From the IMG/VR virus record IMGVR_UViG_3300032116_000001, positions 248,001 to 312,000 of that record: DNA of 64,000 bases; one strand, written 5' to 3'. The notes below the pieces were generated by a model. It ran no database searches, was not told where the DNA came from, and worked only from the letters and a program-made list of their open reading frames with translations. Both the position numbers and the translations under genes were made by a program. Shown piece by piece: positions 92 through 56,275 of this stretch. The first letter of the stretch is position 1; every line of letters begins with the position of its first letter.

Positions 92-412
92 TTATTTTAG
101 GATGTCACTTGCAATATCTTCAATAACAGAAGTTATTCTTCCATCTTTTGAGTGAAGTCTCATGTTGTTAATGTTACGATATTTTTCTTTGATTTTACGT
201 ATAATCAAGTTCACTTTTTGATTAACTTCGTGAATACTGGGGTTGTAATGCCCTTTTGTTCTGAAAAATTTTCTCACAACATTTTCGGTGACCGAATACG
301 CAATTTTAGCCTCGTATCCGTGATCCGAGGCTTGACTTTTTTCAGATGCAAATTGCGTGCGATACCACATAGAATTATTTTTGCTTTTCAAGAGCTGCCA
401 CATTAATGGCAT
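92..412 (-). CDS. Hypothetical protein
   Basis: 106-aa ORF in tandem with flanking minus-strand ORFs; start could be 403. Confidence 0.6.
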   Translation of the reverse strand: MPLMWQLLKSKNNSMWYRTQFASEKSQASDHGYEAKIAYSVTENVVRKFFRTKGHYNPSIHEVNQKVNLIIRKIKEKYRNINNMRLHSKDGRITSVIEDIASDILK

Positions 413-5009: not shown

Positions 5010-5014
5010 ATCTA

Positions 5015-5209
5015 ATGAAAAGCCCATGTATTAAGATTTGCAAACTTGACAACAATGTCTGTATTGCTTGCAAGCGATCATTAGAAGAAATACGTAATTG
5101 GTCTCAATATTCAGATGAACAAAGAGAATTAATTATGATGGATATTAAAAATAATCGATTTTCTATTGAGTGTTATATGTATAAACCCAATAATGAAGTT
5201 AAAAAATGA
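5015..5209 (+). CDS. DUF1289-family small Cys-rich protein
   Basis: SPCIKICKLD..VCIACKRSLEEIRNWS signature. Confidence 0.85.
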   Translation: MKSPCIKICKLDNNVCIACKRSLEEIRNWSQYSDEQRELIMMDIKNNRFSIECYMYKPNNEVKK

Positions 5210-5240
5210 AATTTTAACTTTGCTCTAAGCGGTTACTGGT

Positions 5241-6632
5241 ATGATTGATCCTAATAAAATTATCTCAGATGCAAATTGTGTTGTTTGCGGTACTCCACCT
5301 GAAGAAGGCTCAACTGACCAGCGTTACATTCAGTTTCATGATCGTAAAATATTTTTGTGCGGCAAGCATGCCGAGGCCTTTCATATTGGTGCTGTGATGG
5401 GTCAGCTAGAGCTAAATTCTGCATTAGCGGAATTTATTTTAAAAATGGACGATCCATTAAATTCTCAACAAATCAAAGAGCACATACTTGAAATGGTTCC
5501 GTCAGCACGGCGGCAACTTGAAGATAAGCAATTGCAAGCTCATATAAAAGGAACATATAAGGAGCAATCACCTAGAGAAATTTATGAATATCTTGACAAA
5601 AATGTTATTGGCCAAGAAGAAGCAAAAAGACGCATAAGTTTAGCAGTCTACGAACATTATAAAAACGCCCAAAGACGCGCAGATAGCCCGCTATTAGAAA
5701 AACAAAATATACTTATGCTTGGGCCTTCTGGAAGTGGAAAAACATTAATTGCAAATTCCATTGCGAAAATATTAGACGTTCCATTTGTGTCCGCCGATGC
5801 AACAAGTTATTCTCCCACAGGGTTTCAGGGCGCAGATGTTGATACCATTATTTTTGAAATGATGTACAAATCAAGCGGGGTACATCATGCCGCAGAACAA
5901 GGCATTGCATTTATTGACGAAATTGACAAGCTTTCAACACATGCAATGCAAGGCACAAAATCAGAGGGCTTAAACTACGCAACACAAAGTTCTTTACTTA
6001 AACTTATTGAGGGCAAAAAAGTAAAAGTGCCAATGCAAAATTTGGGCCACCCGCCTGGAACAATGACAATGGTGGATACAACCAAGATGCTTTTTATGTT
6101 CGGCGGGGCATTTAACGGACTTGCTGAGCAGGTGGGCAAGTTGATGGGATACTCTGGAAGAACCATTTCCTTATCCAAAAGAAATGAAGAAGATCGTATA
6201 GAATCTTCGATACGCTCGTATAATATTCTTGCCGAAGCGTCAACCGATGTGATCATAAAAGCGTTGATAGATTTTGGAATGAACACCGAGTTTATTGGTC
6301 GAATTCCAATTATTGTTCCGCTTGCGCCACTAACTAAAGAGCAACTTTACAAGTGCTTAATTGATTTGCCAAACTCGCCAGTTTCCAGATCGCAAATGCT
6401 TTTCGCGGAATCAGGAGTAAAATTGGAGTTTGAGGAAAGCATGCTTCAGGCAGTTGTTGAAACAACTGCCAAATCAGACACAGGAACTCGTGCTTTAAAT
6501 ACTCTTGTTAAAAGAGCTGTTAGCCAAGCCGCGTTTGATCTTTTAGGTTCAGAACCTTCCAGAAAGATCAAACATGTTGTTATAACAAATGAGTGCATTG
6601 CCAATCCAGAATCGTATGTTACAATTAATTAA
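5241..6632 (+). CDS. clpX: ClpX-like AAA+ ATPase (divergent)
   Basis: N-terminal CxxC...CxxH, LDKNVIGQEEAK, KQNILMLGPSGSGKT, FIDEIDK, LLKLIEG, EFIGRIP, TGTRAL. Confidence 0.9.
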   Translation: MIDPNKIISDANCVVCGTPPEEGSTDQRYIQFHDRKIFLCGKHAEAFHIGAVMGQLELNSALAEFILKMDDPLNSQQIKEHILEMVPSARRQLEDKQLQAHIKGTYKEQSPREIYEYLDKNVIGQEEAKRRISLAVYEHYKNAQRRADSPLLEKQNILMLGPSGSGKTLIANSIAKILDVPFVSADATSYSPTGFQGADVDTIIFEMMYKSSGVHHAAEQGIAFIDEIDKLSTHAMQGTKSEGLNYATQSSLLKLIEGKKVKVPMQNLGHPPGTMTMVDTTKMLFMFGGAFNGLAEQVGKLMGYSGRTISLSKRNEEDRIESSIRSYNILAEASTDVIIKALIDFGMNTEFIGRIPIIVPLAPLTKEQLYKCLIDLPNSPVSRSQMLFAESGVKLEFEESMLQAVVETTAKSDTGTRALNTLVKRAVSQAAFDLLGSEPSRKIKHVVITNECIANPESYVTIN

Positions 6633-9009: not shown

Positions 9010-9873
9010 ATGAAAAAGTTTGTTAAATTACCTGTCGGCCAAGCTTGCGAGTGCCCGTTTTACCTCCAGGATGTATCTGGTGATAACAAGTGTGTTTTTA
9101 AATTCTTTGTAACACAAGACAAACTTTCAAAATCTTTTTTAGAGCCAGAAGATTTCAGTGAAGACACCTGGAAGGAAGATTGCGAAGGTTTATATTCCCA
9201 GTGTTCTGTTTTGCCTATAATTTGGCAAATGGATGAAGATATCGAAAGCAATGATGAAGAAATCACAGAAGAAGATCAACTAGAAAGTGAAGATTCTGAA
9301 GATTACGACGATTCTGATGAGCCTGATGATTACGAGGATGGAGATGAACATGAAGTTGTTCAAGTTAGCATTCATCAGGTTGATAATCCTTATGCTGTGA
9401 AGTCTGATATTTTGGTTTTGCCTACAAACATTGGCTTAACAATAGATGACTATAAATTAAACCGCCTTTCAAAAGGCTTAATTCAAGAAGAATGTGATAA
9501 AATTGCCGAAGATTCTGTGAAGATGGGCCACGTTTACCTAACAAGCAATGGTGGAGAAAAAAGCTTAGTAGTTCCCAAGGCTATCGTTCATGCAGTTGTG
9601 GCTGGATTTAGCAGGTTGGTCAATGAGCAAGACATAAAAACAGCAATGAGAAAATCTTTATTAATGGCCGAAGAATTAGGCGCAAATAAAGTAGTAATTC
9701 TTCCATGTGATTGTGGCACTCATGACATTGCTCACACGGCCAGAGTGCAGCTATCTGCAATATATACATTTTTAAACAGTGTTGAAACAAAATCAATCAC
9801 CCATGTATATATTGTTATGGAAGATGAAGAAAGTTTTAATATTTTCCAGGAATACTTTAATAGAATATTCTAA
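9010..9873 (+). CDS. Macro-domain protein with Cys-rich N-terminus and acidic linker
   Basis: DILVLPTN, GHVYLTSNG, KAIVHAVV, AEELGANKVVILP..CG. Confidence 0.8.
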   Translation: MKKFVKLPVGQACECPFYLQDVSGDNKCVFKFFVTQDKLSKSFLEPEDFSEDTWKEDCEGLYSQCSVLPIIWQMDEDIESNDEEITEEDQLESEDSEDYDDSDEPDDYEDGDEHEVVQVSIHQVDNPYAVKSDILVLPTNIGLTIDDYKLNRLSKGLIQEECDKIAEDSVKMGHVYLTSNGGEKSLVVPKAIVHAVVAGFSRLVNEQDIKTAMRKSLLMAEELGANKVVILPCDCGTHDIAHTARVQLSAIYTFLNSVETKSITHVYIVMEDEESFNIFQEYFNRIF

Positions 9874-17423: not shown

Positions 17424-19862
17424 TTGCCTAATTTCGTTATAATACCACCAAGATTAATAGTTGGTAGTTCTGTTGGCACTGATGTTGTAACGTCAGTGAA
17501 CGGGGTTCGTGGCGATTTAATATTTTCGGCTACAGATGGCTTACAACTTGGCTTGTCAGGCAAAACTTTCACTCTTTCTGTCATACCAAACACATATGTT
17601 TTAAAATCTGGGGACACATTTACTGGGAATCTTCAATTTGTTCCGACTGGTGGAGCCTATGGGCTCAGGCTGCACACGTCCACCACCGATCCATCCCAAA
17701 GTGCTGAAGGTGCCGCATACGTCAACACATCTGATGGAACTCTTAAAATTTATCTTGGCGGGTCTTGGCTGGATGTGGGGCAAATGGGGTCTCTTACCGA
17801 GGCACAAGCAGACCTCAGGTACTTAAAACTTGATGGCAGCAACGATCCTATCACTGGGGATATCTCCATGGGTGTTGCCACGCTTAGATTTGGGAATAAA
17901 GCAGGAGACCCTGTTTCTGGTTCTGCGGGAGACGTGTATTTCAACACAAGTCTTAACAAATTAAGGCTTCACAATGGCTCTGCATGGGTGGACGTGGGTT
18001 CGTCAGGCGTCACAAGTATTTCTTCTGGCAATGGCCTTGCAGCTTCTCCCAGCAGCCCCATTACTTCTACTGGAACTCTTTCTGTAGACCAGGCTTATAA
18101 TTTTAACTGGACGGGAGCACACACATTTTCTCAAGCGATCAGTTTTGCCAGCGGCCAAACATTTGATGCGTCAAAACTAACTATAGGAAGTCAGGCTACT
18201 GGCGACATTTTATATTACTCAGGGTCGGCTTGGAGCAGGCTCGCCATTGGGTCAAGCGGCGAAGTTTTAACAGTTGTGAGTGGCGCACCACAATGGGAGC
18301 CTGCGCTTGGAGGACAAATTGGTACGCCATCTGATGGGGTTTATAGTGATGGCTTTTTTGATTCTTGGACATCATCAACTGATGTATCTAACGCCTTTGA
18401 CGACGTAAATGAATTACTTAAAGATATCGCTCCAGTCAAAGCTGGCTTACTTACAGGTAATGCACTTACTCAAATTTCCATGCCTACATTTTACTCTGTT
18501 AAGCTTTCATCAGGCTTAACAGCAGATTGGTATCCATCTGGTGTGGCAGCAGGTGACACGATCAATACTTATTACTTAAGTGGCAATATTGAGCTTACTT
18601 CTCCCTCTGCTTCTAGCGCTTTTAGAGCAGGCAGAAAATTACAGCCATTAACTTTTGGAAGTGTAAATCATAGAATTCATAACAACACGAACCCATCTGG
18701 TGCCACAGCAGCGACAATTGATCTCACCACAGAACCATCTATACCAGCAACATCTGGGTCCCTAACCGTGACTGATCATGGCATATATAATTCAATTTGG
18801 ATGAAAGCTAATGCAGAAGTTAATTATACTCAAACCGCCGAAGGTTGGGAAGGGCATAGTATTTCGTCCACCGAGGCTGGGGAAACGCTTAGATTAGATG
18901 TGTGGCGCGATACGCACTCTAATTCTAACCCAACTCCGTCTTTTTCTACAAGCCCGACGGCCACTGAGGATACTCCCGTAAATAAATATTTAAGTGGGAT
19001 TAATCACTATGGTTTAAACAGCACTTTTGAAGTTCGATTCGCTGCCGCATCTGGCATATTTAACAGATGTTACAATAGCACACAAGTTGCGAGAATTTCT
19101 GGCACTGGAATGCCAAATCTGAATTTAAATCCAGGATCAACGCCGAATTATCTTGACGCTTATGATCGAACAGGGGTGAATTTTGCCCTGGCCACATTAA
19201 GTACATCCAATTCGGCATCACCGAACAAATATTTAACAGTTACTATTTATAAGGCACATGGTGCGTCTGCTTCATCAAACGCATCTATAAACAGGCCCAT
19301 TTGTACATACGGAACAGTATCCACAAATACATCTGACGTGTTTATGGACGAGGCTCAAAGATTGGTAATAGGCACAACGACTTCCTGGACTTCTTCTTCG
19401 GCACTAAGCAACGGAAATGCGCAGCAAAAAATAACAGGCACAAATGTATCATCCTTGCAATATCCTGACTCAAGTGATTATCCAGGGTTTACGGGAGATC
19501 AAGAGTACCAAAGATTTATTTACAAAACATCAGCTTCAACAGGAACAATAACATTTGGGACACTTACAGCCGCGCAAATTTCTCCCTATGGCACAGGTGA
19601 TGTTAACATTTTGTTATATTTAGACGATGACGCTGTATGGTTTGACCTCGGTGTTGTTCAGGGTTCTAATAGTAACGATGGAAGTAGTAGGGCCTTGGCA
19701 ATTCCTGTCAGAGTTTCCACAACAACATCGGGCAGTACTGTTGGCTTTTCTTTTGGAACATATACTACAGGACCCACAGGGTCTGGTAATTTGGGTAGAT
19801 ATCGAATTGTAATTATATTCAGAAATAATACTCGGACAATAACTTCACTCACTGGTGCTTAA
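17424..19862 (+). CDS. Virion structural / tail-fibre protein
   Basis: S/T/G-rich 812 aa; VTSVNG..G, DLRYLKLDG, GDILYY..WSRLAIGSSGEVLTV..GAPQW; TTG start with GGAG SD. Confidence 0.8.
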   Translation: MPNFVIIPPRLIVGSSVGTDVVTSVNGVRGDLIFSATDGLQLGLSGKTFTLSVIPNTYVLKSGDTFTGNLQFVPTGGAYGLRLHTSTTDPSQSAEGAAYVNTSDGTLKIYLGGSWLDVGQMGSLTEAQADLRYLKLDGSNDPITGDISMGVATLRFGNKAGDPVSGSAGDVYFNTSLNKLRLHNGSAWVDVGSSGVTSISSGNGLAASPSSPITSTGTLSVDQAYNFNWTGAHTFSQAISFASGQTFDASKLTIGSQATGDILYYSGSAWSRLAIGSSGEVLTVVSGAPQWEPALGGQIGTPSDGVYSDGFFDSWTSSTDVSNAFDDVNELLKDIAPVKAGLLTGNALTQISMPTFYSVKLSSGLTADWYPSGVAAGDTINTYYLSGNIELTSPSASSAFRAGRKLQPLTFGSVNHRIHNNTNPSGATAATIDLTTEPSIPATSGSLTVTDHGIYNSIWMKANAEVNYTQTAEGWEGHSISSTEAGETLRLDVWRDTHSNSNPTPSFSTSPTATEDTPVNKYLSGINHYGLNSTFEVRFAAASGIFNRCYNSTQVARISGTGMPNLNLNPGSTPNYLDAYDRTGVNFALATLSTSNSASPNKYLTVTIYKAHGASASSNASINRPICTYGTVSTNTSDVFMDEAQRLVIGTTTSWTSSSALSNGNAQQKITGTNVSSLQYPDSSDYPGFTGDQEYQRFIYKTSASTGTITFGTLTAAQISPYGTGDVNILLYLDDDAVWFDLGVVQGSNSNDGSSRALAIPVRVSTTTSGSTVGFSFGTYTTGPTGSGNLGRYRIVIIFRNNTRTITSLTGA

Positions 19863-19866
19863 TTTT

Positions 19867-22800
19867 ATGCCTTGGAACGAAACAGATATTGCTTTTAAGA
19901 AGCTTAATAACAAAAGAGTAACCACTAATCTTGGAAAGGGGATTAATGAAGAACGCGGCGCAAAAACCATCAATGTGAGTGCTGATGAAATTTGGACAGA
20001 TAGTGTTCCTGGTGTGCCGCCTGGATCAACCACATCTGTAATTGAAGTCTATGATTATGCCGATAGACTTACTTTGATAGAAGACCTATCAGTTCCTAAT
20101 CAACAAGCATGGTTTGCGACGACAATCACAAATACTGTGACTGCTAACAACGGCACAACTTTATCTGAGTCTTCTCGATTAATGGATTGGGTTTCAGATA
20201 AATATGATGCCCCTGGCACGGCCCCTGGTTTAGGCTATGAAATCAAAGTGTATGATAAAGATGACATATTAATTCCAAAGGGAGATGCAAGTCAGTGGTA
20301 CTTTGATTATCAAACTGGTATTCTAATTTTTAGAAATGCAAGCACAGATAGCGGAAGCGTGTCGTCAAGAGCGCCTTTTAAAATAGTAGGTTACAGATAT
20401 ATAGGAAACAAAGGCGCTGGAACAGTTTCTTCTATTGGTGGCAGTAATGGGATTATAACTGATTTAATATCAAATGCACCAATCACTTCATCAGGTAATT
20501 TGCAGCTAGATGTGGCATATTCGCCGTCTTGGTCTAGTAGACATACCTTTAGTTATAATCCAACATCAGGCGTTAGCACTAATCATATATTATCAATTAC
20601 TGGTGCGCCTTTTGGACAATCAAGTGGCGCGGCCATCGAAATAGGTGCCACAAGTGCCTTTGATGGATCAACCGCTGGTTTTTTCAATGGAAGTTCTAGT
20701 GGCACATACATTGCGATTAATGCTGCTTCTTCGTACACGGGTGATTTTTTAAATTTTGGCCTTGCCGCGGGCGCTGGCTACAGCGAAAGACTTAAAATTA
20801 GTGGACAAGGCGTCCTTTCTCTTTTAAACCCAGGAGGGGCGTCAGGCCCGCAAATCTTCTTTGGAAATGCTTCTGCTCCAAGCTCTCCGTCTAATGGAGA
20901 CCTTTGGTATACTGGCAGTGCGCTTAATTTTAGATCAAGTGGAACTATATATAATCTTATAGGAAGCACTATAGGCGATCCATTAAGTGGCGGAACTGTG
21001 GGTTCGGTTATTTTCGTGGGATCAGGTAACACATTGTCACAAGATAATGCGAATTTATTTTGGGACGACTCTAATAATCGCCTGGGACTTGGCAATGCTA
21101 CGCCGCAAATGCCGCTAGATGTCAGAACTGGAGCAAGCTCAATTATTAGAGCGTTAAACACGACATCTTCAGGGCTGAATGAGGGCTCGGTAATATCACT
21201 TCACCAAGGCGATGTTGGATTGATCGTTAATGGTAATAGACTTGGTGGTATCATGATGGGAGGGGCTGATGGAGCCAATTATTCATCTCAGCATAATGCA
21301 GCAGCAATACAGGCTTTTGCTGGCCAAACTTGGTCTTTTGGTTCGTCAGAAGGCTCTTATTTAACTTTTGAAACCACGCCATTGGGCTCTGCAAGTCGTG
21401 TTGAACGAATGAGAATTGACGCTGGCCCAATTATTTGGTTTGGTAATGGTGCAGCATCAGCCTCGCCTATTTCAACTACGATATCAGCAACCTCTGGCTT
21501 AGGAACTAATATCGGTGGCGCAAATTTAACCATAAGAAGTGGCTCTGGAACTGGCACTGGCCAAAGTGGAGATATAGTTTTTCAGACAGCTACCCCAGGT
21601 GGATCAGGGTCGGGGGCAAATGCCCACAGCGATAGATTTGTTATTTCTAGCCATGGGGATATAACCATTTATGGCAACACTGGAAATATTTTATGGCATG
21701 CAGATACAAGCAAATTAATTATTGATGGCGACGGTTATTCAGATCATGTTTCTATTAAGCAAGGAGGCGTAACATCAATACAGCTCGGGCATTCATCTTT
21801 GTCAGGTTTGCTGGGCGGAAGAATTTATGGTTCAGGAGAAGAAGCTGGCGGACTCGAAATTTCTTCAGTTAGTTCGATACAATTACTGTCTGGAGTCGAC
21901 CATGGCATAGACATATATCCACCTGGTGTTGGAGCAGGAGAAACTGGCCAGTTGCGCTTTAGAGAGCTTGATGCGAATGGCTCTAATTTCATATCTTTTA
22001 AATCCCCTGACGCAATTGCAAATAATGTCACATATGTTTTACCATCGGCACACCCAAGCACTAACCAAGTGCTCACAGCCTCAAGCATATCTGGCTCAGG
22101 CCCATATGAGGTTGTTTTAAGCTGGGGAACCCCGTCTGGTGGAGGAATTACAAGCTTAAATGGCCAAACAGGAGGAACACAGACATTTGCCAATGATACA
22201 AATGTTACTATTTCTTCATCATCTAATACTCATACTCTTGGATGGACTGGGCAACTTGCAGTGTCTCGTGGCGGCACAGGTGCTGGTACATTTACTTCCA
22301 ACGGTGTTTTACTCGGAAGTGGCACATCGGCAATTACAGCCACGGCGGCGGGGACGTCTAACCAAGTATTGAGAGTTCCTGGAGCGGGTGGCGCTCCCGC
22401 ATTCGGGGCAATTGATATTTCATCAACCGCGGCTGTTACAGGGTCGCTTGCCGTAACCAATGGCGGCACGGGCACGGGGACAGCATTTACAGAAAACAAT
22501 GTTGTTTTCGCTGGATCGTCGGGCGTATATTCACAGAGTAATGCTTTTGCATTTACTTCATCAACAGGACAACTGGCACTTTCGACAACAGGCGCTGCAG
22601 CAGGCGTGCTCATCGGCGGTGATGTCCAGTTATATCGTTCTGGAGCCAATATTCTTGGGATTCCAGACATTGTTGAAATTCGCTCAGCAAATGAATTACG
22701 TTTCAACAACTCTGCTGATACTAAATTCACTTCTTTTGTGCCTGGGTCACAGACGGTCACGATTAACTATACTCTTCCAGCGTCTGCGCCCTCTCTCAAT

Positions 22801-24669
22801 GATGTCTTAAAAGCGACGTCAGTGTCGGGAACTGACCCTGTCACAGTTGCATTGGGATGGGCTGCAGATACTGATACAGGAATTACAAGCCTTAATAGTC
22901 AGACAGGAAACACACAAACGTTTGCAAATGATACAAACGTTACAATTACATCAGGTTCTAACACTCATACACTTGGGTGGAGCGGCCAGCTTTCTGTTGG
23001 CCGCGGTGGAAGTGGTGCGGGAACGTTCACCTCAAATGGTGTCTTGCTCGGGAATGGAGCATCTCCTTTTAATGTGACAGCTGCTGGCACTGCCAACCAA
23101 GTCTTACGAATTCCTGGGGCTGGCGGAGCGCCAGTTTTTGGTGCAATTGATCTTGCACAAGCCGCCGCGGTCACGGGCACACTTGCGGTCGGAAACGGTG
23201 GGACTGGGACTGGAACTGCGTTTACGGCGGGGAGTGTTGTTTTTGCAGGTTCTGGTGGAACATATTCGCAAGACAATGCAAATCTTTTCTGGGATGACAC
23301 AAACGACCGCTTAGGAATAAGAACTAATACACCAGGTGCTACACTTCATATTAACCCGTCAACTGGCTCTCAGGCGTCATGGTTACAAGAAGGTGCTTTC
23401 TTTAGGGTTCAGGCTGGAACAAGAACAAACAACAGCACCGCAACATCTGGAACAGCTACATGGGCAGTGTTTAACTCATTTGCGCAACCAACCTTAGCGG
23501 CCACGAACACTGGCGTCACAACCACAAACGCAGCAACCGTATTTATAGCTAACTCTCCAGCGGCTGGGGCTAATATGACAATTACCAACAGGTATGCTCT
23601 ATGGGTAGACGCTGGTTGGTCAAGATTTAACGGCTCTGTGGGATTGGGCTTGGTCCCAGATGACAACAACATGTTGTTCAGTTTTATTACCACTTCCTCA
23701 AACTTAACTCGACGTGCGATACAGGGCTTAAATTCGGTTACGGGATCAATTACCTCAACATTTCCCGTTGGTATATCAGGAAGAATAGAGATTAATGCTG
23801 CCGCAAACACAATTTCATACGCAGCAGGGCTGTTTGGATCAGCAAGAACACTTTCGGGCCAAAGCGGGACTATTACCGCTCTTTACGGTATGGATTTCGA
23901 TGTATGGCATCAGGGCACCGCAAATATTGGCACCATGGCAGCGTCCAGAGCTTTTGCTACACTAACAAATACATCTAATGGAACCATTACTGATTGGATT
24001 GGCTATTCTGCACAGCTTAATACCTCTGTTGGCGGAAGTGCTTCTGCCACAAATGCATTAGGTTACGATACGATCTTTTCATTAAGCGGATCGGGAACGA
24101 TTGCAAATCTAACAGGCTACCGAATACAAAACCCGTCGGGAAGCCAAACGATAACAAATCTTTATGGCATTCGGATCGCTGACCTAACGCGGGGAACAAA
24201 CAACTTCGGTATCTACTTTGATGGTACATCAGGGCTGGCAAGGCAAGGCATCTGGTGGAATGCTGACACAAATCTTTATCGCTCAGCAGCAAACACACTG
24301 AGAACGGATGATGAACTAGTCGTTGGGCAAAGAGCTACATCAGGCGTTGTCGTGTTGACAGACGGGGCGAATATCTCACTAGATGCCAGTTTGGGCAACC
24401 ACTTCAGGGTGACTTTAGGGGGTAACAGAACACTACTGGCTCCGACAAATCCAGTCGATGGACAAAAGATTACGATTGAAGTCATTCAAGACGGTGGCGG
24501 AAATAGGACATTAACTCTAACCACGGGGAGTAGCGGAAGTTTCATTTTTGGGACAGATATAACAGGAATAACACTTACCACGACTGGTGGCCTGCGCGAT
24601 TTAATCGGATGTGTTTATTCATCATCGCTTAGTCGATGGATGGTTGTGAGTTTTGTCAAGGGATTCTAA
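19867..24669 (+). CDS. Long tail fibre / receptor-binding protein (about 1600 aa)
   Basis: G/S/T-rich; SQDNANLFWDD..RLG twice, ERMRID, large internal duplication, C-terminal DASLGNHFRVTLGGNRTL..PTN..GQ..IQDGGGNRTLT tip domain; ATG at 19867. Confidence 0.9.
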   Translation: MPWNETDIAFKKLNNKRVTTNLGKGINEERGAKTINVSADEIWTDSVPGVPPGSTTSVIEVYDYADRLTLIEDLSVPNQQAWFATTITNTVTANNGTTLSESSRLMDWVSDKYDAPGTAPGLGYEIKVYDKDDILIPKGDASQWYFDYQTGILIFRNASTDSGSVSSRAPFKIVGYRYIGNKGAGTVSSIGGSNGIITDLISNAPITSSGNLQLDVAYSPSWSSRHTFSYNPTSGVSTNHILSITGAPFGQSSGAAIEIGATSAFDGSTAGFFNGSSSGTYIAINAASSYTGDFLNFGLAAGAGYSERLKISGQGVLSLLNPGGASGPQIFFGNASAPSSPSNGDLWYTGSALNFRSSGTIYNLIGSTIGDPLSGGTVGSVIFVGSGNTLSQDNANLFWDDSNNRLGLGNATPQMPLDVRTGASSIIRALNTTSSGLNEGSVISLHQGDVGLIVNGNRLGGIMMGGADGANYSSQHNAAAIQAFAGQTWSFGSSEGSYLTFETTPLGSASRVERMRIDAGPIIWFGNGAASASPISTTISATSGLGTNIGGANLTIRSGSGTGTGQSGDIVFQTATPGGSGSGANAHSDRFVISSHGDITIYGNTGNILWHADTSKLIIDGDGYSDHVSIKQGGVTSIQLGHSSLSGLLGGRIYGSGEEAGGLEISSVSSIQLLSGVDHGIDIYPPGVGAGETGQLRFRELDANGSNFISFKSPDAIANNVTYVLPSAHPSTNQVLTASSISGSGPYEVVLSWGTPSGGGITSLNGQTGGTQTFANDTNVTISSSSNTHTLGWTGQLAVSRGGTGAGTFTSNGVLLGSGTSAITATAAGTSNQVLRVPGAGGAPAFGAIDISSTAAVTGSLAVTNGGTGTGTAFTENNVVFAGSSGVYSQSNAFAFTSSTGQLALSTTGAAAGVLIGGDVQLYRSGANILGIPDIVEIRSANELRFNNSADTKFTSFVPGSQTVTINYTLPASAPSLNDVLKATSVSGTDPVTVALGWAADTDTGITSLNSQTGNTQTFANDTNVTITSGSNTHTLGWSGQLSVGRGGSGAGTFTSNGVLLGNGASPFNVTAAGTANQVLRIPGAGGAPVFGAIDLAQAAAVTGTLAVGNGGTGTGTAFTAGSVVFAGSGGTYSQDNANLFWDDTNDRLGIRTNTPGATLHINPSTGSQASWLQEGAFFRVQAGTRTNNSTATSGTATWAVFNSFAQPTLAATNTGVTTTNAATVFIANSPAAGANMTITNRYALWVDAGWSRFNGSVGLGLVPDDNNMLFSFITTSSNLTRRAIQGLNSVTGSITSTFPVGISGRIEINAAANTISYAAGLFGSARTLSGQSGTITALYGMDFDVWHQGTANIGTMAASRAFATLTNTSNGTITDWIGYSAQLNTSVGGSASATNALGYDTIFSLSGSGTIANLTGYRIQNPSGSQTITNLYGIRIADLTRGTNNFGIYFDGTSGLARQGIWWNADTNLYRSAANTLRTDDELVVGQRATSGVVVLTDGANISLDASLGNHFRVTLGGNRTLLAPTNPVDGQKITIEVIQDGGGNRTLTLTTGSSGSFIFGTDITGITLTTTGGLRDLIGCVYSSSLSRWMVVSFVKGF
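22144..23271 (+). repeat. Internal duplication in the tail fibre (two copies of about 130 aa, 735 nt apart)
   Basis: GITSLNxQTGxTQTFANDTNVTI...GTGTGTAFT..VVFAGS.G.YSQ at about 22144-22536 and 22879-23271. Confidence 0.9.
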
Positions 24670-34561: not shown

Positions 34562-35788
34562 ATGCCAGAAATATTTCGTATTAGTGGTATGCATATTTCA
34601 AATATAATTTACAAAGGCGACCACGATGAGGCTACAATAAAGCAGATTCAGAATTGCGCTACAGATGAGTATGCGCAGCATGCTGTGCTGTGTGCAGATG
34701 GACACAAAGGTTGGAATATGCCCATTGGCGGCGTAGTGGCTTATGAAAATCACATCAGCCCTGCGGGAGTTGGGTTTGACATTGCGTGTGGTAATAAGGC
34801 CGTGCAGCTCAATGTAACATACGATCAAATTAAGGACGATTTGGCCAAAATCGCTGATGAAATTTTTGCATCTTTATCATTCGGAGTGGGAAGGGTGAAT
34901 AATGAGCGTGTCGAGCATGATGTATTTAATGATGCTGCGTGGCGCAACGTTAACTTTCTTCGTAAAACTCAATCGTTGATGCCTCTTGCTAGAGAACAAC
35001 TTGGTACTATCGGCTCTGGTAATCATTATGTAGATGTGTTCAAAGATGAAAAGGATTGTGTATGGGTGGGTGTTCACTTCGGTAGCCGAGGCCTTGGGCA
35101 CAAGATTGCCACTGAGTTCATTACTCAAGCTGGTGCAAATCCCAATGGTAACATGGATGATCCTCCTTGTCTTTTGGATGTAAACACTTCACTGGGGGAA
35201 GACTATATTCAAGCTATGAATTTAGCAGGACGGTATGCTTATGCAGGAAGAGACTGGGTGTGTCAGAAGGTGGCTTCTATCCTTGGAGCACAGATCGTGG
35301 AAGAGATTCATAATCACCATAATTTTGCATGGAAGGAGAATCATTTTGGCTCGGATTATTGGGTAGTCAGAAAGGGAGCTACTCCCGCGGCTCCTGGGCA
35401 GAAGGGATTTGTCGGCGGATCAATGGGCGAAAACTCTGTGATCCTTGAGGGTGTTGACACTGAAGAATCTGCGAAAATGCTTTATTCTACAGTACATGGC
35501 GCAGGCCGTGTACTGTCAAGAACTCAAGCCGCAGGCAAAACAAGATGGGTGAACGGAGAAAAAATCAGAGTTTCTGAAGGCCTTGTGAACATGGATAATG
35601 TTTTAAAGAATCTTTCCGAAAGTGGTGTAATCCTTCGTGGCGGTGGTGCTGACGAAGCGCCAGAGGTTTACAAGAGATTACCCGAAGTGCTTGCGCATCA
35701 TGGAAATACGATCAAGGTTGTTCACCAATTGAGCCCACTAATTGTGTGTATGGCGGGATCGGAAATCAGAGACCCGTATAAAGATTAA
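34562..35788 (+). CDS. rtcB: RNA 3'-phosphate/5'-OH ligase RtcB
   Basis: ADGHKG..MPIGG, VGFDIACG, LGTIGSGNHY, HFGSRGLG, HNHHN, RKGATPA, HGAGR, DEAPEVYK. Confidence 0.95.
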   Translation: MPEIFRISGMHISNIIYKGDHDEATIKQIQNCATDEYAQHAVLCADGHKGWNMPIGGVVAYENHISPAGVGFDIACGNKAVQLNVTYDQIKDDLAKIADEIFASLSFGVGRVNNERVEHDVFNDAAWRNVNFLRKTQSLMPLAREQLGTIGSGNHYVDVFKDEKDCVWVGVHFGSRGLGHKIATEFITQAGANPNGNMDDPPCLLDVNTSLGEDYIQAMNLAGRYAYAGRDWVCQKVASILGAQIVEEIHNHHNFAWKENHFGSDYWVVRKGATPAAPGQKGFVGGSMGENSVILEGVDTEESAKMLYSTVHGAGRVLSRTQAAGKTRWVNGEKIRVSEGLVNMDNVLKNLSESGVILRGGGADEAPEVYKRLPEVLAHHGNTIKVVHQLSPLIVCMAGSEIRDPYKD

Positions 35789-42573: not shown

Positions 42574-44217
<1,644 letters not shown>

Positions 44218-46427: not shown

Positions 46428-46461
46428 GCAGTATGATTTTTTCATACTGCTTTTATTTTTT
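46428..46461 (+). terminator. Intrinsic terminator after the tmRNA
   Basis: GCAGTATGA-TTTTT-TCATACTGC followed by TTTTATTTTTT. Confidence 0.85.
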
Positions 46462-46617: not shown

Positions 46618-46691
46618 ATGATTTTTTTTGGGTTTTTAGTCCCAAATTGCCTACTTTTTATTTAAAAATACGTATTATAATTATATTGCTT

Positions 46692-46762
46692 GCTCCATTA
46701 GCTCAATGGTAGAGCTGGGGTCTCTAAAACCTTGGTCGCGGGTTCGATTCCCGTGTGGAGCA
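46692..46762 (+). tRNA. tRNA with CUA anticodon (amber suppressor) no. 1; CCA not encoded
   Basis: Acceptor GCTCCAT/GTGGAGC, D-arm GCTC..GAGC, anticodon arm GGGGT-CTCTAAA-ACCTT (CTA at 46724-46726), T-arm GCGGG-TTCGATT-CCCGT, A73. Confidence 0.85.
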
Positions 46763-46783
46763 GACAATATATTAAAAATACGC

Positions 46784-46858
46784 GCTCTAGTAACTCAGTG
46801 GTAGAGTGGCCCTCTCTAAAAGGGCATGTCGCGGGTTCGAGTCCCGCCTAGAGCGCCA
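46784..46858 (+). tRNA. tRNA with CUA anticodon (amber suppressor) no. 2
   Basis: Acceptor GCTCTAG/CTAGAGC, D-arm ACTC..GAGT, anticodon arm GCCCT-CTCTAAA-AGGGC (CTA at 46816-46818), T-arm GCGGG-TTCGAGT-CCCGC, G73-CCA. Confidence 0.93.
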
Positions 46859-47314: not shown

Positions 47315-47390
47315 GGGTCAGTAGCTCAGTTGGTAGAGCAGCGGTCTTTTAAACCGCGGGTCGCGGGTTCGAGCCCCGCCTGGCCCACCA
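47315..47390 (+). tRNA. tRNA-Lys(UUU)
   Basis: GGGTCAG/CTGGCCC-ACCA; anticodon arm GCGGT-CTTTTAA-ACCGC. Confidence 0.96.
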
Positions 47391-47401
47391 GAATTTTTCA
47401 T

Positions 47402-47477
47402 GGAGGGATAGCTCAGTCGGTAGAGCAGCTGACTCTTAATCAGCATGTCGTGGGTTCGATCCCCACTCCCTTCACCA
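47402..47477 (+). tRNA. tRNA-Lys(CUU)
   Basis: GGAGGGA/TCCCTTC-ACCA; anticodon arm GCTGA-CTCTTAA-TCAGC. Confidence 0.96.
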
Positions 47478-48192: not shown

Positions 48193-48775
48193 AATTGTAA
48201 TAAATGAAGATTTGCAAGTGGTTGAGACTTTGGAAACTTATGGATCACGAAGTCTGGCTCAGGCATTCGACCACTATCAAGCGCCTCGTATTAGGGATGG
48301 CGTCGAGCTTGTAACCCTTGCTGACCCAGAGACCTGGGTGCCAGCAGACTATGATAAACAATCCGAAAATTGGACCGAAAGGTCTGTTATTTTAATGTCA
48401 AAGCTATATAAAGCTTTTGAAGAAAAAATTAAAATGGTTTCTGATTATTACGTGCTCACAATGGGAGAAAGCGGAGAAAGGTTTCAACGAATTTATGCTA
48501 TTGGCGACGACCATATCACGGTTGAATATTCTTCTCGTGGATGTTTGAGGGGGTGCTGTCCCGATGAAGAATATTCTTATGATATTCCTATACAGGCACT
48601 CTGGGACACCAGCGTTATTGACAATATGAAAACCGAAAAAGAAAAAGCCGCGCAAGAGAAAAAAGCACAAGAGATTAAAGATGCCCGCGACCGCGAAAGA
48701 CAACGTAAAAAAGAACGAGAAGAAAATGAACTTAAAGAATATCATCGGCTTATGGAAAAATACAAAGGAAACTAA
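48182..48775 (+). CDS. Hypothetical protein with charged C-terminal helix
   Basis: GGAGG upstream of ATG 48182; CxxCC; ends ELKEYHRLMEKY. Confidence 0.75.
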   Translation: MWPKIVINEDLQVVETLETYGSRSLAQAFDHYQAPRIRDGVELVTLADPETWVPADYDKQSENWTERSVILMSKLYKAFEEKIKMVSDYYVLTMGESGERFQRIYAIGDDHITVEYSSRGCLRGCCPDEEYSYDIPIQALWDTSVIDNMKTEKEKAAQEKKAQEIKDARDRERQRKKEREENELKEYHRLMEKYKGN

Positions 48776-48776
48776 A

Positions 48777-49502
48777 ATGACTACCGAATACAAACCGCCA
48801 TATGTTGCTCGCCTTGGTGAAGGTTTTTTAAAGCCTTGCAAGTTTAGTGACGGAAAAGTTCACAAGATTAAATATCACTATGTTGATGTCTATGAGGTTA
48901 ATGAGGACTCAGAAACTAAAATAGGAACATACGAGGTTTCCGATTTTAAGTCCCCGCGTGTTGTGTTTCATCCGTTTAGACATGACGGTGAATGGTACGC
49001 ACTAGTAAGTGAAAGCAAAAAAATATTTGTCTATTCATTGCCAGAAATGAAATTATTAGCTGAACTTGAACCACAGGGTTGCATTAAGTTTTTAGAATTT
49101 TATATACCCAGATTTCATCATGTAGTATATAAAGGAGTTGCTTTTACTCTTGTGGACAAAGAAATTGAAGAAGATTATAAGGATAATGAAGCATGGTGCC
49201 ATGCAGATTTTGCTTTTGTAATGGGGTATGACCCGTTCTGTAATTCGCCTAATTACGTAAATATTGTTGATCTTTCAAATATTAAGATCGGAGAAATTAA
49301 ATTTAAGCAAGAATATTGGCATGAATGTCCGCAGTGGCTTGATTTAAATCAAATTGTGCAAATATCCTATTGGGATAAAAGCTTCCCTGCATTTGCAATC
49401 GCCACAGTAGAGTATGCTTCAACGTCAACGGGCTTAAAATGCGGAAACAATGGATGGACTGACGAAACTCTTGGTGCCATAGATAGTGGTGAAAAATCAT
49501 GA
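48777..49502 (+). CDS. Hypothetical beta-rich protein
   Basis: AAGGA SD; ATG 1 nt after the previous stop. Confidence 0.75.
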   Translation: MTTEYKPPYVARLGEGFLKPCKFSDGKVHKIKYHYVDVYEVNEDSETKIGTYEVSDFKSPRVVFHPFRHDGEWYALVSESKKIFVYSLPEMKLLAELEPQGCIKFLEFYIPRFHHVVYKGVAFTLVDKEIEEDYKDNEAWCHADFAFVMGYDPFCNSPNYVNIVDLSNIKIGEIKFKQEYWHECPQWLDLNQIVQISYWDKSFPAFAIATVEYASTSTGLKCGNNGWTDETLGAIDSGEKS

Positions 49503-49825
49503 GCTAGACTACCGCGCCTTATATATATATTTTCGTTAGAAAAGACATTGGCGTAGCGGACCAGATGGTTCAGGCCTGTCATGCTGCGCAAGAATCGGGA
49601 GCTAAATTTGGCTGCCCCGATTCTTGCCACCTTGTTCTTTGCTCGGTTGAAAATACATTTGAATTGGAAAAAATAAGCTATGTTTGCCAAGAGAATGACA
49701 TAAAATTTGTTACTTTTTACGAGCCTGATGACCAGATGGGAGACACTGCAATTTGCACGGAACCAATCTGGGGAGAAAAAAGAAAGGCTTTTAGAAAATT
49801 TAACACATGGAAACCCGTGGTATAA
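49499..49825 (+). CDS. Pth2-like peptidyl-tRNA hydrolase with in-frame TAG at codon 3 (49505-49507)
   Basis: ATG AGC TAG ACT..., then YIFVRKDI...QMVQACHAAQE...HLVLCSVEN..EL...FYEPD....TAICTEP; ATGA overlap with the upstream stop; the ORF-track start at 49565 would remove the conserved VRxD strand. Confidence 0.8.
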
Positions 49826-49853: not shown

Positions 49854-51659
49854 ATGAACATTGTTATTGCTCAATTAGAACTCCGCACGGGCGACCTATA
49901 CGGGAATACTGCGAAAATTATCAACACCGTGGAAGAATCAAGCGACAATTCCGTGATTATATTTCCAGAACTTGCTGTCACTGGGTATAATTGCGGGTCG
50001 CTTTTTGAAAGTGACGACTTTATCAATGACGCCCTTGAGTGTGTGGATCAAATTGTTAAAGCGACTAAGGGCACAAACAAAACTGCTATTTTTGGAGCAC
50101 CGAGATTTGCCACGCCTGATAGAGAACCTAACGGTAACATCAGACTCCACAACAGTGCTATGATCGCAAGAGACGGAAAACTTCTTGCTGTTTACGACAA
50201 GATTTTGTTGGCTAATGATTTTCAGCATGAAGATCGAAAATATTTTATTCCTGGTGAGAATCTATTCACATTCCAGGTTGGCGATCAGGTGGCGGGCGTT
50301 CTTATCTGTGAGGATATCTGGGCACCCGATCATGACCGAAACTTGGTTGCAGAGCTTAAAGCCCTCAATCCTGATCTTTCCATGATCTTTTGCATCAACT
50401 ATAGTTACTACACTTATGAGAAGCATTCAGCTCGTCAAAATTTGCTTTCTAATCTTGCACGAGATCATAAAGTAGGAATTTTTTATGTTAACGCCGTGGG
50501 GGTGGGAGATATTGTTAAGAACTTTATGGTTTATGACGGTAGGTCGATGGTTTATGATGCCTTGGGCAATCTGTTTGACATCCTTCCGTCTTTCGAAGAA
50601 AAAATTATATCTTGCTCCTTAAAAAAGGGGAAAATTTTCAATTGGTTTGACAATGATTGGGATGGAATTGACAAGCGTAATCAAAGGAGATTTCTATATT
50701 CAAAGAATGATAAATACCAGACTATCTGGTGTGCCCTGAAATATGCTTTGCGTCAGTTGATGGACCAAACTGGCATAGAGCGTGCCCAAGTTCACGTTTC
50801 TGGTGGCATAGACAGCGCCGTTGTGGCAGCGCTTTGCGCCAAGGCGCTTGGGCCTGATCGTTGTGTTTTCATTAGTAATCCCTCCCAATATAATGGAGAT
50901 ATTACTAAAAATAATGCTCAGTACATTGCTGACAAGCTCGGGGTCCCCCTGTATTGGATGCCCGTGGGCGATCTTACAAATCATGCCAAGTCGATTTTCC
51001 AAAATGCTTACTTGGAATCTGCAGAAGATGGTTGTCGCATGCCCCTTGCCAGCGAAGAGCTTCCCCAGATGGTGGACACTACATTAGATGCTGTAGGTCG
51101 AACATTGCTTGGCCTGTCAATCTGTCATTATTTTAAATCGGCTATTATTTCCACGGGCAATCACACTGAAAATGTACTTGGATGGTTTACTTTCCATGAC
51201 GTGGGCAGCGTGGGTCTTTTCCAGCCGCTTGGTGACCTGACAAAATCAGAGGTAAATTGCTTGGCGAAATATATCAATGAAATATATGAGGATGAAATCA
51301 TTCCAATCAATCTTTATGATGGAAGCACCAAGCCCATGGCTGAGCTTGCAGACAGTAGCGAAGACCCATTTGATTATCCTCTGTATTCTGGAATTTGTGC
51401 CGAAATTATCCGACGCAGGATGACTGTAAGAGACCTGGAAGAAGCCTATGATAATCACACGTTAACTACTGATTATTTTTGCGAATGCGACCCATACAAT
51501 TATCCCAAGGATGTTTTTGTGTCGGCGGCACGTGATGCCTGGAATCGATCAAAGAGGAGTGTATTTAAGTGCGCACAATCATCCCCAACACTTATTGTTT
51601 CTCCCAGAAGCAGAGGCTTTAGTTCAAGAGAGACAATTTTAAACTACTATAATTCTTAA
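49854..51659 (+). CDS. nadE: Glutamine-dependent NAD+ synthetase
   Basis: Nitrilase-fold FPELAVTGY, YDK..L, ICEDIW; synthetase SGGIDSAV, STGNHTE, LGDLTKSEV, PMAEL. Confidence 0.93.
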   Translation: MNIVIAQLELRTGDLYGNTAKIINTVEESSDNSVIIFPELAVTGYNCGSLFESDDFINDALECVDQIVKATKGTNKTAIFGAPRFATPDREPNGNIRLHNSAMIARDGKLLAVYDKILLANDFQHEDRKYFIPGENLFTFQVGDQVAGVLICEDIWAPDHDRNLVAELKALNPDLSMIFCINYSYYTYEKHSARQNLLSNLARDHKVGIFYVNAVGVGDIVKNFMVYDGRSMVYDALGNLFDILPSFEEKIISCSLKKGKIFNWFDNDWDGIDKRNQRRFLYSKNDKYQTIWCALKYALRQLMDQTGIERAQVHVSGGIDSAVVAALCAKALGPDRCVFISNPSQYNGDITKNNAQYIADKLGVPLYWMPVGDLTNHAKSIFQNAYLESAEDGCRMPLASEELPQMVDTTLDAVGRTLLGLSICHYFKSAIISTGNHTENVLGWFTFHDVGSVGLFQPLGDLTKSEVNCLAKYINEIYEDEIIPINLYDGSTKPMAELADSSEDPFDYPLYSGICAEIIRRRMTVRDLEEAYDNHTLTTDYFCECDPYNYPKDVFVSAARDAWNRSKRSVFKCAQSSPTLIVSPRSRGFSSRETILNYYNS

Positions 51660-55413: not shown

Positions 55414-55706
55414 AATTAAATATTGAAATTGATAATATTACCCAATCTCAGGCGGCAGCCATTGAAGATATGCTGGCACTATGGTCAGAGCTTGGTGAAC
55501 AAAATGCCAGTCGATGGGTAGCATTTTTTGCCAACGGGCATGAAGGATTTGCTCCGATCATTAAAGTCGAAGGAAATTTCGCCAGCCGATACAAAGGTGA
55601 CATGGGTCAAAGATGGGGCAAAGTTGCTTTTAATAACAAAAACAACGAAGACGAAGAATTGGAAACAGTGTATTTCATTGACCCTCATAAAATTCACACA
55701 GAATAA
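55410..55706 (+). CDS. Hypothetical phage protein
   Basis: QAAAIEDML..W..LG...SRWVAFFA.G..F.P. Confidence 0.7.
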   Translation: MKLNIEIDNITQSQAAAIEDMLALWSELGEQNASRWVAFFANGHEGFAPIIKVEGNFASRYKGDMGQRWGKVAFNNKNNEDEELETVYFIDPHKIHTE

Positions 55707-55723
55707 AACGGGGAAAATACTCA

Positions 55724-56275
55724 ATGAATCATCCAAACATACTTGTAAATTTTTTTGGCGGCCCAGCAATTGGAAAAAGCAATTGCGCAAGATCGCTTTG
55801 TTCATTATTGAGTGAATTCGGTATATCAAACGAATATGTTCCCGAATTTGCAAAAAAATTAACTTGGAAATCTGACTTAAACACCAGATCAAACCAAGTG
55901 TTTGTTACAGCAACACAATTTGACGACATACTAACTGTTTATGATAAGGTGTCCGTAACGGTCACTGATGGCCCCTTAATTCTGGGCATGGTTTATCCAG
56001 GCCCATGCTGCACTCCCGTTTGGAAAGAACATGTTATTGAAATGCATAATTATTTCAACAACATCAACATATTTATTCAAAGAAATAATGAATGGTATCA
56101 GCCAATTGGCAGAACCCAAACACTTGAAGAATGCATAAGTGCCGATCAAAGAACTTTAGACTTCTTGAATCAATATCAAATTGATTATGTCACCATCCCA
56201 GCTGACAGACACATGTCTAGTCGTGTCTTTGATGTTTTAATGGAGAAAATAAAAAATGAGAAAACACACACATAA
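55724..56275 (+). CDS. P-loop NTPase, NadR/AAA_28-like
   Basis: NFFGGPAIGKS, EFAK.L.W, TDGPL, GRTQTLEE. Confidence 0.8.
   Translation: MNHPNILVNFFGGPAIGKSNCARSLCSLLSEFGISNEYVPEFAKKLTWKSDLNTRSNQVFVTATQFDDILTVYDKVSVTVTDGPLILGMVYPGPCCTPVWKEHVIEMHNYFNNINIFIQRNNEWYQPIGRTQTLEECISADQRTLDFLNQYQIDYVTIPADRHMSSRVFDVLMEKIKNEKTHT

Follow-up and report, generated by a model that had tools for sequence, protein, structure and literature searches.

The gated gene and its protein

The window considered here, the whole stretch of DNA that was analysed, comprises 64,000 nucleotides (nt) at positions 248,001 to 312,000 of the IMG/VR record IMGVR_UViG_3300032116_000001, and its source is a jumbo phage (the record is 378,848 bp). 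On the + strand, at 49499-49825, lies a short gene whose reading frame opens with ATG AGC TAG and then runs on, past this amber stop at codon 3, through a domain predicted to have the fold of type 2 peptidyl-tRNA hydrolase (Pth2). Below we refer to the few codons up to the early stop as the leader, and to the stop itself as the gate. The leader stands behind a Shine-Dalgarno (SD)-like motif, and its ATG overlaps, as ATGA, the stop of a 273-amino-acid (aa) open reading frame (ORF) that has no match in Pfam or PHROG; the overlap suggests that the two genes are translationally coupled. Coordinates of these and other features are collected in Table 1.

Between the TAG and a conserved Y-x-F-V-R-x-D strand there is no ATG, GTG or TTG in frame. 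The first canonical in-frame start past the gate, ATG 49565, lies inside helix 1 and opens an 86-aa ORF, so that a protein begun there would lose strand beta-1 and with it a near-invariant Arg and an invariant Asp. The base that follows the TAG, at position +4, is A. Two tRNA genes with the anticodon CUA stand on the same strand, 2.65-2.74 kb 5' of the gated gene. We consider it highly probable that this place in the window holds an intact gene, encoding a divergent protein of Pth2 fold, with a stop at codon 3 and with translation gated by a suppressor tRNA. An earlier account of this DNA, made from its letters alone (the sequence-only reading), had noted the ATG AGC TAG start, the ATGA overlap and the missing start ahead of the conserved strand, all of which can be seen directly, and had called the gene beyond the TAG intact; the ORF does run to its TAA, and the domain is conserved, with eight columns invariant across 42 aligned sequences. 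It had likewise proposed readthrough, a proposal that stands, but it overlooked the decisive element, which is the pair of tRNA(CUA) genes.

The AlphaFold2 model of the window protein (predicted local distance difference test, pLDDT, 92.5; predicted template modelling score, pTM, 0.86) has the four-stranded mixed sheet and flanking helices of the Pth2 alpha/beta fold. The top 14 PDB matches returned by Foldseek are all Pth2, with template modelling scores (TMq) of 0.73-0.80 and probability 1.0, and the best match in the viral structure library is the annotated peptidyl-tRNA hydrolase of phage RaK2 (TM 0.93), which is itself a member of the family described here. By sequence the relationship is far more remote. 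In Pfam nothing matches the 105 residues after the TAG at E<=0.1, and in PHROG they match only a family of unknown function; against Pfam PTH2 (PF01981) they give E=0.11 and 13.2 bits, and the cut-off of 23 is not reached. All 43 family members match PTH2 at E<=1, the best of them at 1.3e-7, and a profile built from an alignment of 42-43 homologues matches solved Pth2 structures (24bt at E=7e-6, 2zv3 at E=5e-4, also 1rzw and 1q7s). The family has in common with Pth2 the N-terminal signature V-x-R-x-D-L...Q-x-x-H-A and the T-A strand.

On the strength of these models and profiles, we assign the fold to Pth2 and regard the family as a divergent branch of the Pth2 superfamily. The window protein shares its alpha/beta fold with known Pth2 enzymes (PF01981; 2zv3, 3erj, 1xty and human Bit1, 1q7s); it differs from them in falling below the Pfam cut-off, in a G-K-G-K loop that is two residues shorter throughout the family according to hidden Markov model (HMM) alignments, and in having E-P-D instead of D-A-G. 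The description of the gene as Pth-like in the sequence-only reading is accordingly right for fold and remote homology and wrong by the Pfam PTH2 threshold. The invariant columns indicate clear purifying selection on the domain downstream of the gate. On the family tree the window protein has a long branch, and at one near-invariant position it departs from the other members, with Asp18 for Gln.

The family is large, with 1,862 representatives at E<=1e-10 among 1.84 billion, and the tblastn matches fall in 38 phage records, nearly all of them jumbo phages. A TGA-gated member was looked for in phage Atu_ph07, whose genome encodes two putative Pths and an opal suppressor, but tblastn searches with two queries from the family did not find one; the window protein does match one of the Atu_ph07 Pths structurally.

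Conservation of the early stop and its pairing with suppressor tRNAs

To follow the gate across homologues, we surveyed 80 IMG/VR loci together with GenBank loci, yielding 71 distinct proteins, and called gates by tracing reading frames from tblastn anchors. Each locus was examined with 3-10 kb on either side of the homologue, and "no suppressor" therefore often means "not nearby"; the survey statistics ignore kinship, except for the tree-based count of TGA changes given below. The genes fall into 52 with a TAG gate, five with a TGA gate and 14 that are ungated and have an ordinary start. The sequence-only reading had left open that the TAG might be unique to one assembly, and this is not so: 57 of the 71 distinct homologues have the same early stop when their 5' ends are compared, far more than chance would give. 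All 57 share one architecture, in which an SD and a start codon (ATG in 55, GTG in two) are followed by 0-7 further sense codons and then the stop. Most leaders have two sense codons (33), three (14) or four (6). Ahead of the leader start, 48 of the 57 have a strict SD, compared with a background of 0.10 (p=3e-39). Cultured phages are among the carriers, and the stop position is shared by proteins of only 33-46% identity.

Starts downstream of the gate offer these genes little. Of 54 short forms, 36 lack any ATG, GTG or TTG from the gate as far as the R-x-D motif, and only six have a post-gate start early enough to retain strand beta-1. In seven members of one clade the frame is interrupted again by a TAG, always in the loop that follows helix 1, and no alternative start could rescue those members. 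The base at +4 is a purine in 54 of the 57 gated genes, compared with 0.56 at first codon positions of these genes (p=8e-11). In E. coli, a 3' purine favours nonsense suppression.

Further evidence for suppression comes from the agreement between the gate and nearby tRNAs. Where any suppressor was found near a gated gene, the 41 TAG gates are accompanied by tRNA(CUA) and never by tRNA(UCA), and the five TGA gates by tRNA(UCA) and never by tRNA(CUA) ([[41,0],[0,5]], Fisher p=7.3e-7). A suppressor is nearby in 46 of the 57 gated genes and in four of the 14 ungated ones (p=3.7e-4). The nearest one is on the same strand in 45 of 46 cases and upstream in 36, at a median of 797 nt, and in 13 cases it lies no more than 300 nt upstream. 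On the maximum-likelihood tree the TGA state requires five changes, at least three of them forced by well-supported branches and lying inside TAG-gated clades, so the gate and the anticodon must have switched together repeatedly. Taken together, the SD motifs, this covariation and the seven second TAGs argue that readthrough is needed, as the sequence-only reading had held, and make a non-canonical start past the TAG very unlikely.

The suppressor tRNAs look to have been inherited together with the genes. When 55 distinct suppressors are compared by sequence with one another and with 341 sense tRNAs, 45 have their closest counterpart in the suppressor of another phage, and the nearest relative of the UCA tRNAs at two loci (L057 and L075) is a CUA suppressor. 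Their acceptor stems and discriminator bases are highly variable, so that the residue inserted is probably not conserved, which would fit a gate placed in a non-conserved N-terminal tail or loop. In the window, tRNA 1 has U1:A72, G2:C71 and G73 and no encoded CCA, while tRNA 2, 78% identical to it, has G1:C72, G73 and an encoded CCA. The acceptor features of tRNA 1 appear similar to those of tRNA-Gln and supE, judged by what we take to be the identity elements of E. coli glutaminyl-tRNA synthetase. The ARAGORN labels "Pyl" (for CUA) and "SeC" reflect the anticodon alone. We rejected insertion of selenocysteine or pyrrolysine, as the tRNAs are ordinary cloverleaves of 71-80 nt scoring 60-69 bits on the general tRNA model, and not of the specialised build expected for selenocysteine (long variable arm, extended acceptor) or pyrrolysine (compact D-loop), although no search was made for SelB, pyrrolysyl-tRNA synthetase or a selenocysteine insertion sequence (SECIS).

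The leader by itself invites comparison with the bar minigenes of phage lambda, two-codon ORFs that cause peptidyl-tRNA drop-off. Like the leaders here, lambda bar consists of an SD, an ATG, one further sense codon and a stop, and it has the same thematic link to Pth. The leader might accordingly provoke drop-off without any readthrough, the downstream ORF being translated by reinitiation or never made. The sequence-only reading had suggested such a minigene, marked as inference, and had seen a feedback logic in it, peptidyl-tRNA that has dropped off being the substrate of Pth. The size of the leader (two sense codons in the majority) and its strong SD agree with this. Unlike lambda bar, however, the frame runs on into a conserved domain, one under purifying selection and in some members crossed by a second TAG; the last sense codon before the gate is not conserved, 24 different codons being found there; and the type of stop tracks the adjacent anticodon, which neither drop-off nor reinitiation requires. 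We regard a minigene as very improbable.

A lone in-frame TAG at codon 3 also resembles a nonsense mutation or a sequencing error, and some phages are known to recode stops by means of suppressor tRNAs, so that a pseudogene, an error or a genome-wide reassignment of TAG (code 15) has to be weighed. Past the TAG the ORF is unbroken and conserved, as a pseudogene would not be, and the early stop is kept between diverged proteins across independent assemblies and cultured phages, which rules out an error specific to one assembly. Genome-wide recoding we rejected. Reading TAG as sense adds little to ORF length on the + strand of the window, which is already densely coding under code 11, and 49505 is the sole convincing in-frame TAG within a real gene in the 64 kb. 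Other ORFs that merge across a TAG prove to be alternative frames of real genes, or the TAG merely closes a frame upstream of a start; one merged candidate, 55420-55815, is spurious, as a proper 98-aa ORF fills another frame. The stops of 77 greedily chosen ORFs are 56 TAA, 17 TGA and four TAG, and with one of the last an artefact overlying tRNAs, three window genes still end in a real TAG. The surveyed loci are otherwise standard-code as well, with a median coding density of 0.87 in the standard code and of 0.88 when TAG is counted as sense. Pseudogene, error and reassignment are together hardly credible.

The stop-gated gene often has a partner. The commonest neighbour is an HD-domain protein of about 200 aa, found at 23 of the 71 loci and directly downstream at 17, and the same HD domain is fused N-terminally in long forms of the family (RAS14, XacN1, L038 and L080; 41% identity, E=7e-45). 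Its H...HD...H...D motif is invariant. The only solved relatives are entries for the HD region of a class-II tRNA nucleotidyltransferase (3wfo-3wfs), by profile (E=2.4e-4) and as all top 16 fold matches. The HD gene is often gated in its turn, by a conserved internal TAG in a group of the GAP32/CBB type and at L008, L029 and L043, and by an N-terminal M-x-TAG leader at L023, L073 and L082. At L073 and L082 the Pth2 gene is ungated, a tRNA(CUA) is still present and it is the HD gene that has the gate. At a locus without a suppressor (L018), the HD gene at 11006 is preceded in frame by M-L-TGA. This could simply mark where the upstream gene stops, or it could be an opal gate served by a tRNA outside the DNA examined.

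A possible switch and its purposes

The mechanism we propose builds on the anatomy of the locus, the fold, the conservation of the gate, its covariation with the anticodon and the same-strand linkage, all of which are observed. Ribosomes would start at ATG 49499, by means of the SD and coupled to the upstream ORF, add Ser and meet UAG. Where release factor 1 wins, only fMet-Ser would be released and no enzyme made. Where phage tRNA(CUA) 1 or 2, or both, have been expressed, matured and charged, a residue would be added at the gate, within the non-conserved N-terminal tail, and translation would go on to yield the full 108 residues. We infer with high confidence that full-length protein would arise only if the cognate suppressor tRNA beats the release factor at codon 3. 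In general terms the module would consist of a suppressor tRNA and a stop-gated Pth2-like gene, often with the HD phosphohydrolase, adjacent or fused and often gated too.

As to purpose, we favour a feed-forward AND gate, though our confidence in it is moderate to low: the dose of a hydrolase cleaning tRNA 3' ends would be tied to the activity of the phage's suppressor. The enzyme would stay off until the phage tRNA works, so that its expression would be delayed and sharpened, and its amount would be scaled to the peptidyl-tRNA and stalled ribosomes that arise from readthrough of natural TAG terminators. A phage transfer-messenger RNA (tmRNA), which serves in ribosome rescue, lies directly 5' of the two suppressors in the window, in an RNA cluster 2-3.4 kb upstream of the gated gene, and two adjoining tRNA-Lys genes lie between the suppressors and that gene. 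Pth deficiency in E. coli is relieved by overexpressed tmRNA or tRNA-Lys, and in this respect the neighbouring tmRNA and tRNA-Lys genes fit the proposed purpose. In E. coli short of Pth it is tRNA-Lys that becomes limiting, and anticodon nucleases classically attack this tRNA. At four further loci (L019, L042, L059 and L068) a tmRNA is found within 10 kb of the Pth2-like gene, and it is by proximity that the tmRNA may be counted as part of the module.

On a further reading, the module might be a dedicated sensor-effector circuit, in which the suppressor would be kept mainly to report the state of tRNA charging and of the release factor, and the gated Pth2-like and HD proteins would act on tRNA 3' ends in the conflict between phage and host. 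We put this forward tentatively, as a possibility with the balance of probability against it.

The module might also be a counter-defence kit, in which the two proteins would clean tRNA 3' ends that host toxins have blocked, and the gate would only be a safety catch on a potentially harmful hydrolase until the whole phage tRNA module is present and active. Speculative targets include N-acetyl-aminoacyl-tRNA, made by GCN5-related N-acetyltransferase (GNAT) toxins, and a CCA end pyrophosphorylated by toxSAS/CapRel-type toxins, by analogy with the pairing of toxSAS and small alarmone hydrolases. Substrates at tRNA 3' ends are suggested both by the fold and by the affinities of the HD protein. Genes for tRNA repair and translation are plentiful in the window and related loci (RtcB, the two tRNA-Lys, tmRNA), and a tRNA nucleotidyltransferase gene lies near the ME3 copy. 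The PTH2 of jumbo phages has been assigned to RNA repair and ribosome rescue (Iyer et al. 2021, PMC7824862), and detoxification of a tRNA-acetylating toxin by Pth is documented (PMC9241777). However, a gate that needs a charged tRNA would shut just when tRNAs are disabled, and no defence system or toxin target has been identified at these loci. We think this counter-defence role unlikely.

Negative feedback can be imagined as well. The Pth2-like protein, with or without the HD protein, might act on the suppressor tRNA itself, or on its aminoacyl or peptidyl form, and so keep readthrough of TAG terminators in host and phage within tolerable bounds. The gate would make the output of the enzyme a direct function of suppressor activity, both partners resemble enzymes of tRNA 3' ends (a Pth2 fold, and an HD domain closest to tRNA nucleotidyltransferase), and the tRNA and the gene are linked closely enough to be inherited jointly. 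Yet nothing points to specificity for the suppressor, and this negative feedback leaves unexplained why a phage would retain a suppressor at all. Ten of the 14 ungated homologues have no suppressor nearby, which indicates that the enzyme has a role independent of suppressors. We judge such a homeostat to be decidedly unlikely.

Several points weigh against the suppressor gate and the feed-forward purpose that we prefer. The case for readthrough is drawn entirely from comparative genomics, and feed-forward scaling is one of several rationales that fit. The catalytic residues of archaeal (Sulfolobus) Pth2 are reported to be a Lys in the G-K-G-K loop and the Asp of D-A-G. According to the HMM alignment, the family has a near-invariant Gln at the Lys position, where the window protein has Asp18, and at the Asp position the near-invariant Glu72 of the E-P-D motif; with these replacements, peptidyl-tRNA hydrolase chemistry would not be assured. 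The window has no HD homologue. Eleven of the 57 gated loci have no suppressor in the flanks examined, several of which extend only 3 kb to either side; for two of the phages concerned with gates of this kind, XacN1 and RsoM2USA, suppressors are reported elsewhere in the genome (RsoM2USA: PMC8504454). Conversely, a tRNA(CUA) is present at two ungated Pth2 loci (L070 and L006) where no gate was found on either the Pth2 or the HD gene. Finally, the back-up stops after the three TAG terminators of the window are compatible with tolerance of amber suppression but statistically indistinguishable from those of TAA genes (median 6.5 codons).

Known systems, annotation and other features of the window

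Jumbo phages were already known to carry PTH2 genes and suppressor tRNAs, and block-wise recoding of stops was known from phages as well. PTH2 genes were noted in jumbo phages by Iyer et al. (2021, PMC7824862), in which "suppressor" and "stop codon" have 0 occurrences. A close parallel is with phages that use codes 15 or 4 (crAss-like, Lak and others; 10.1101/2021.08.26.457843 and related papers), where in-frame stops are likewise decoded by a phage tRNA with anticodon CUA or UCA and the availability of the suppressor has been proposed as a control of expression too. In recoded phages, numerous in-frame stops are spread over many genes, often the whole late block, and coding density falls away if code 11 is applied, whereas the module described here belongs to standard-code genomes in which TAG still terminates, and the in-frame stop is limited to a small module, usually one codon at position 2-5. 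A synthetic suppressor-tRNA "leak dampener" (PMC7969014) uses the same AND logic, with an amber codon and a co-regulated suppressor, but it was engineered in E. coli, while the module here occurs in nature, is widespread, co-evolves and is bound to a single enzyme family. We found no earlier account of a single-gene stop gate on a Pth2/HD module with its cognate suppressor, in a search that did not reach most subscription journals, so a prior description is possible.

The pairing of gene and tRNA would supply candidate targets for suppressors left without one in papers on cultured phages. The authors of the XacN1 study sought targets of its two CUA suppressors and found none, and the RsoM2USA (PMC8504454) and Atu_ph07 papers list abundant stop codons and leave the suppressor targets open. 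Found in dozens of unrelated giant phages, the pairing would explain these "orphan" suppressor tRNAs, and if the sensor-effector reading were true, the orphan suppressors of standard-code jumbo phages would exist chiefly for this switch. The same reading would make it a natural, evolvable tRNA-based AND gate whose codon and anticodon switch together between amber and opal. A single-gene switch made of a tRNA and a stop codon in standard-code genomes would be intermediate between ordinary decoding and full reassignment, and as such would bear on how recoding begins. It might also furnish compact parts for synthetic biology, in the form of orthogonal gates and natural contexts selected for readthrough, including the +4 purine. 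One testable hypothesis would thereby join the Pth2-fold enzyme, the HD phosphohydrolase, tmRNA and suppressors in the handling of tRNA 3' ends and ribosome rescue by giant phages.

The gate also exposes a systematic error of annotation, the gene being missing, truncated or split in many GenBank records. There is no annotation at the match in the records of phages BF, fHe-Yen9-03/04 and Erwinia SNUABM; CBB_406 is truncated, and the in-frame TAG of the HD gene has split it into two small GenBank coding sequences (CBB_407 and CBB_408). In the Salmonella phage Arash (OQ632216), the "peptidyl-tRNA hydrolase" gp84c is a 50-aa C-terminal fragment and the tRNA(CUA) is mislabelled tRNA-Phe. The RsoM2USA gene is unannotated, and XacN1 ORF364 is annotated as starting past its leader.

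Table 1. Features of the window, followed by gates and tRNAs at related loci (positions at the latter are those of the respective locus).
Feature	Position	Strand	Remarks
SD-like motif GTGGTGA	49486-49492	+	6 nt 5' of leader ATG; read from sequence
Leader ATG AGC TAG	49499-49507	+	ATG 49499-49501, AGC 49502-49504, amber gate TAG 49505-49507
Predicted Pth2-fold domain, 105 sense codons	49508-49822	+	beta-alpha-beta-alpha-beta-beta-alpha; sequence, AlphaFold2, Foldseek
TAA terminator of gated gene	49823-49825	+	read from sequence
Upstream 273-aa ORF, function unassigned	48681-49502	+	stop TGA 49500-49502
Amber-suppressor tRNA 1, anticodon CUA, 73 nt	46691-46763	+	ARAGORN; Rfam tRNA model 60.5 bits
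Amber-suppressor tRNA 2, anticodon CUA, 75 nt	46784-46858	+	ARAGORN; Rfam tRNA model 69 bits
tmRNA, tag peptide AENNFAFAA	46065-46422	+	ARAGORN; Rfam RF00023 91.3 bits
Terminator hairpin behind tmRNA	46428-46450		terminator scan
tRNA-Lys, anticodon UUU	47315-47390	+	ARAGORN
tRNA-Lys, anticodon CUU	47402-47477	+	ARAGORN
Real TAG terminators	2967, 3928, 56748		next TAA/TGA 5, 0, 1 codons on
RecD/Dda-like helicase	729-2969		
RtcB-type tRNA/RNA ligase	34562-35788		
GroEL chaperonin	42577-44217		
Glutamine-dependent NAD synthetase	49854-51659		two domains (CN_hydrolase + NAD_synthase); directly 3' of gated gene
ME3 leader			ATG ACT TAG behind SD
CBB leader			ATG GCA CAA TAG behind SD
LR756511 (595 kb) leader			ATG ACT CAC TAG behind SD
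XacN1 ORF364 (L085) leader	943-951		ATG AAG TAG; five codons 5' of annotated start
Arash leader			M-L-TAG
Arash gp84c as annotated (L087)	5163-5315		
Arash tRNA(CUA) (L087)	6301-6375		
RsoM2USA leader			M-L-TAG
RsoM2USA gene (L088)	4977-5343		
LR756500 leader			M-K-TAG
LR756501 (735 kb) leader			M-S-TAG
LR756501 second TAG (L089)	5091		
RaK2, Hallingskeid			ungated
Second TAG in one clade (L047, L053, L060, L061, L063, L069, L084)	aa 37-40 after gate		
HD-gene TAG, L002	3450		
HD-gene TAG, L044/L045/L048/L049/L056	10450		
HD-gene TAG, L039	6900		
HD-gene TAG, L008	10465		
HD-gene TAG, L029	10470		
HD-gene TAG, L043	11183		
HD-gene TAG, L023	10326		
HD-gene TAG, L073	10636		
HD-gene TAG, L082	3214		
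L070 tRNA(CUA)	9779-9850		106 nt upstream of ungated Pth2-like gene
L006 tRNA(CUA)	317-392		about 9.6 kb from ungated Pth2-like gene, opposite strand

Promoter and terminator scans of the window were uninformative except for the hairpin behind the tmRNA, and an Rfam scan found no ribozymes or other RNA motifs beside the suppressors. DNA-level relatives of the window in the phage collection were limited to a tRNA match. The helicase, RtcB, GroEL and NAD synthetase genes are auxiliary genes typical of jumbo phages. Elsewhere in the window, an ORF of 1,604 aa (19855-24669) covers the GC-richest part, with a GC content of 0.48 at 22-24 kb compared with about 0.40 in the remainder.

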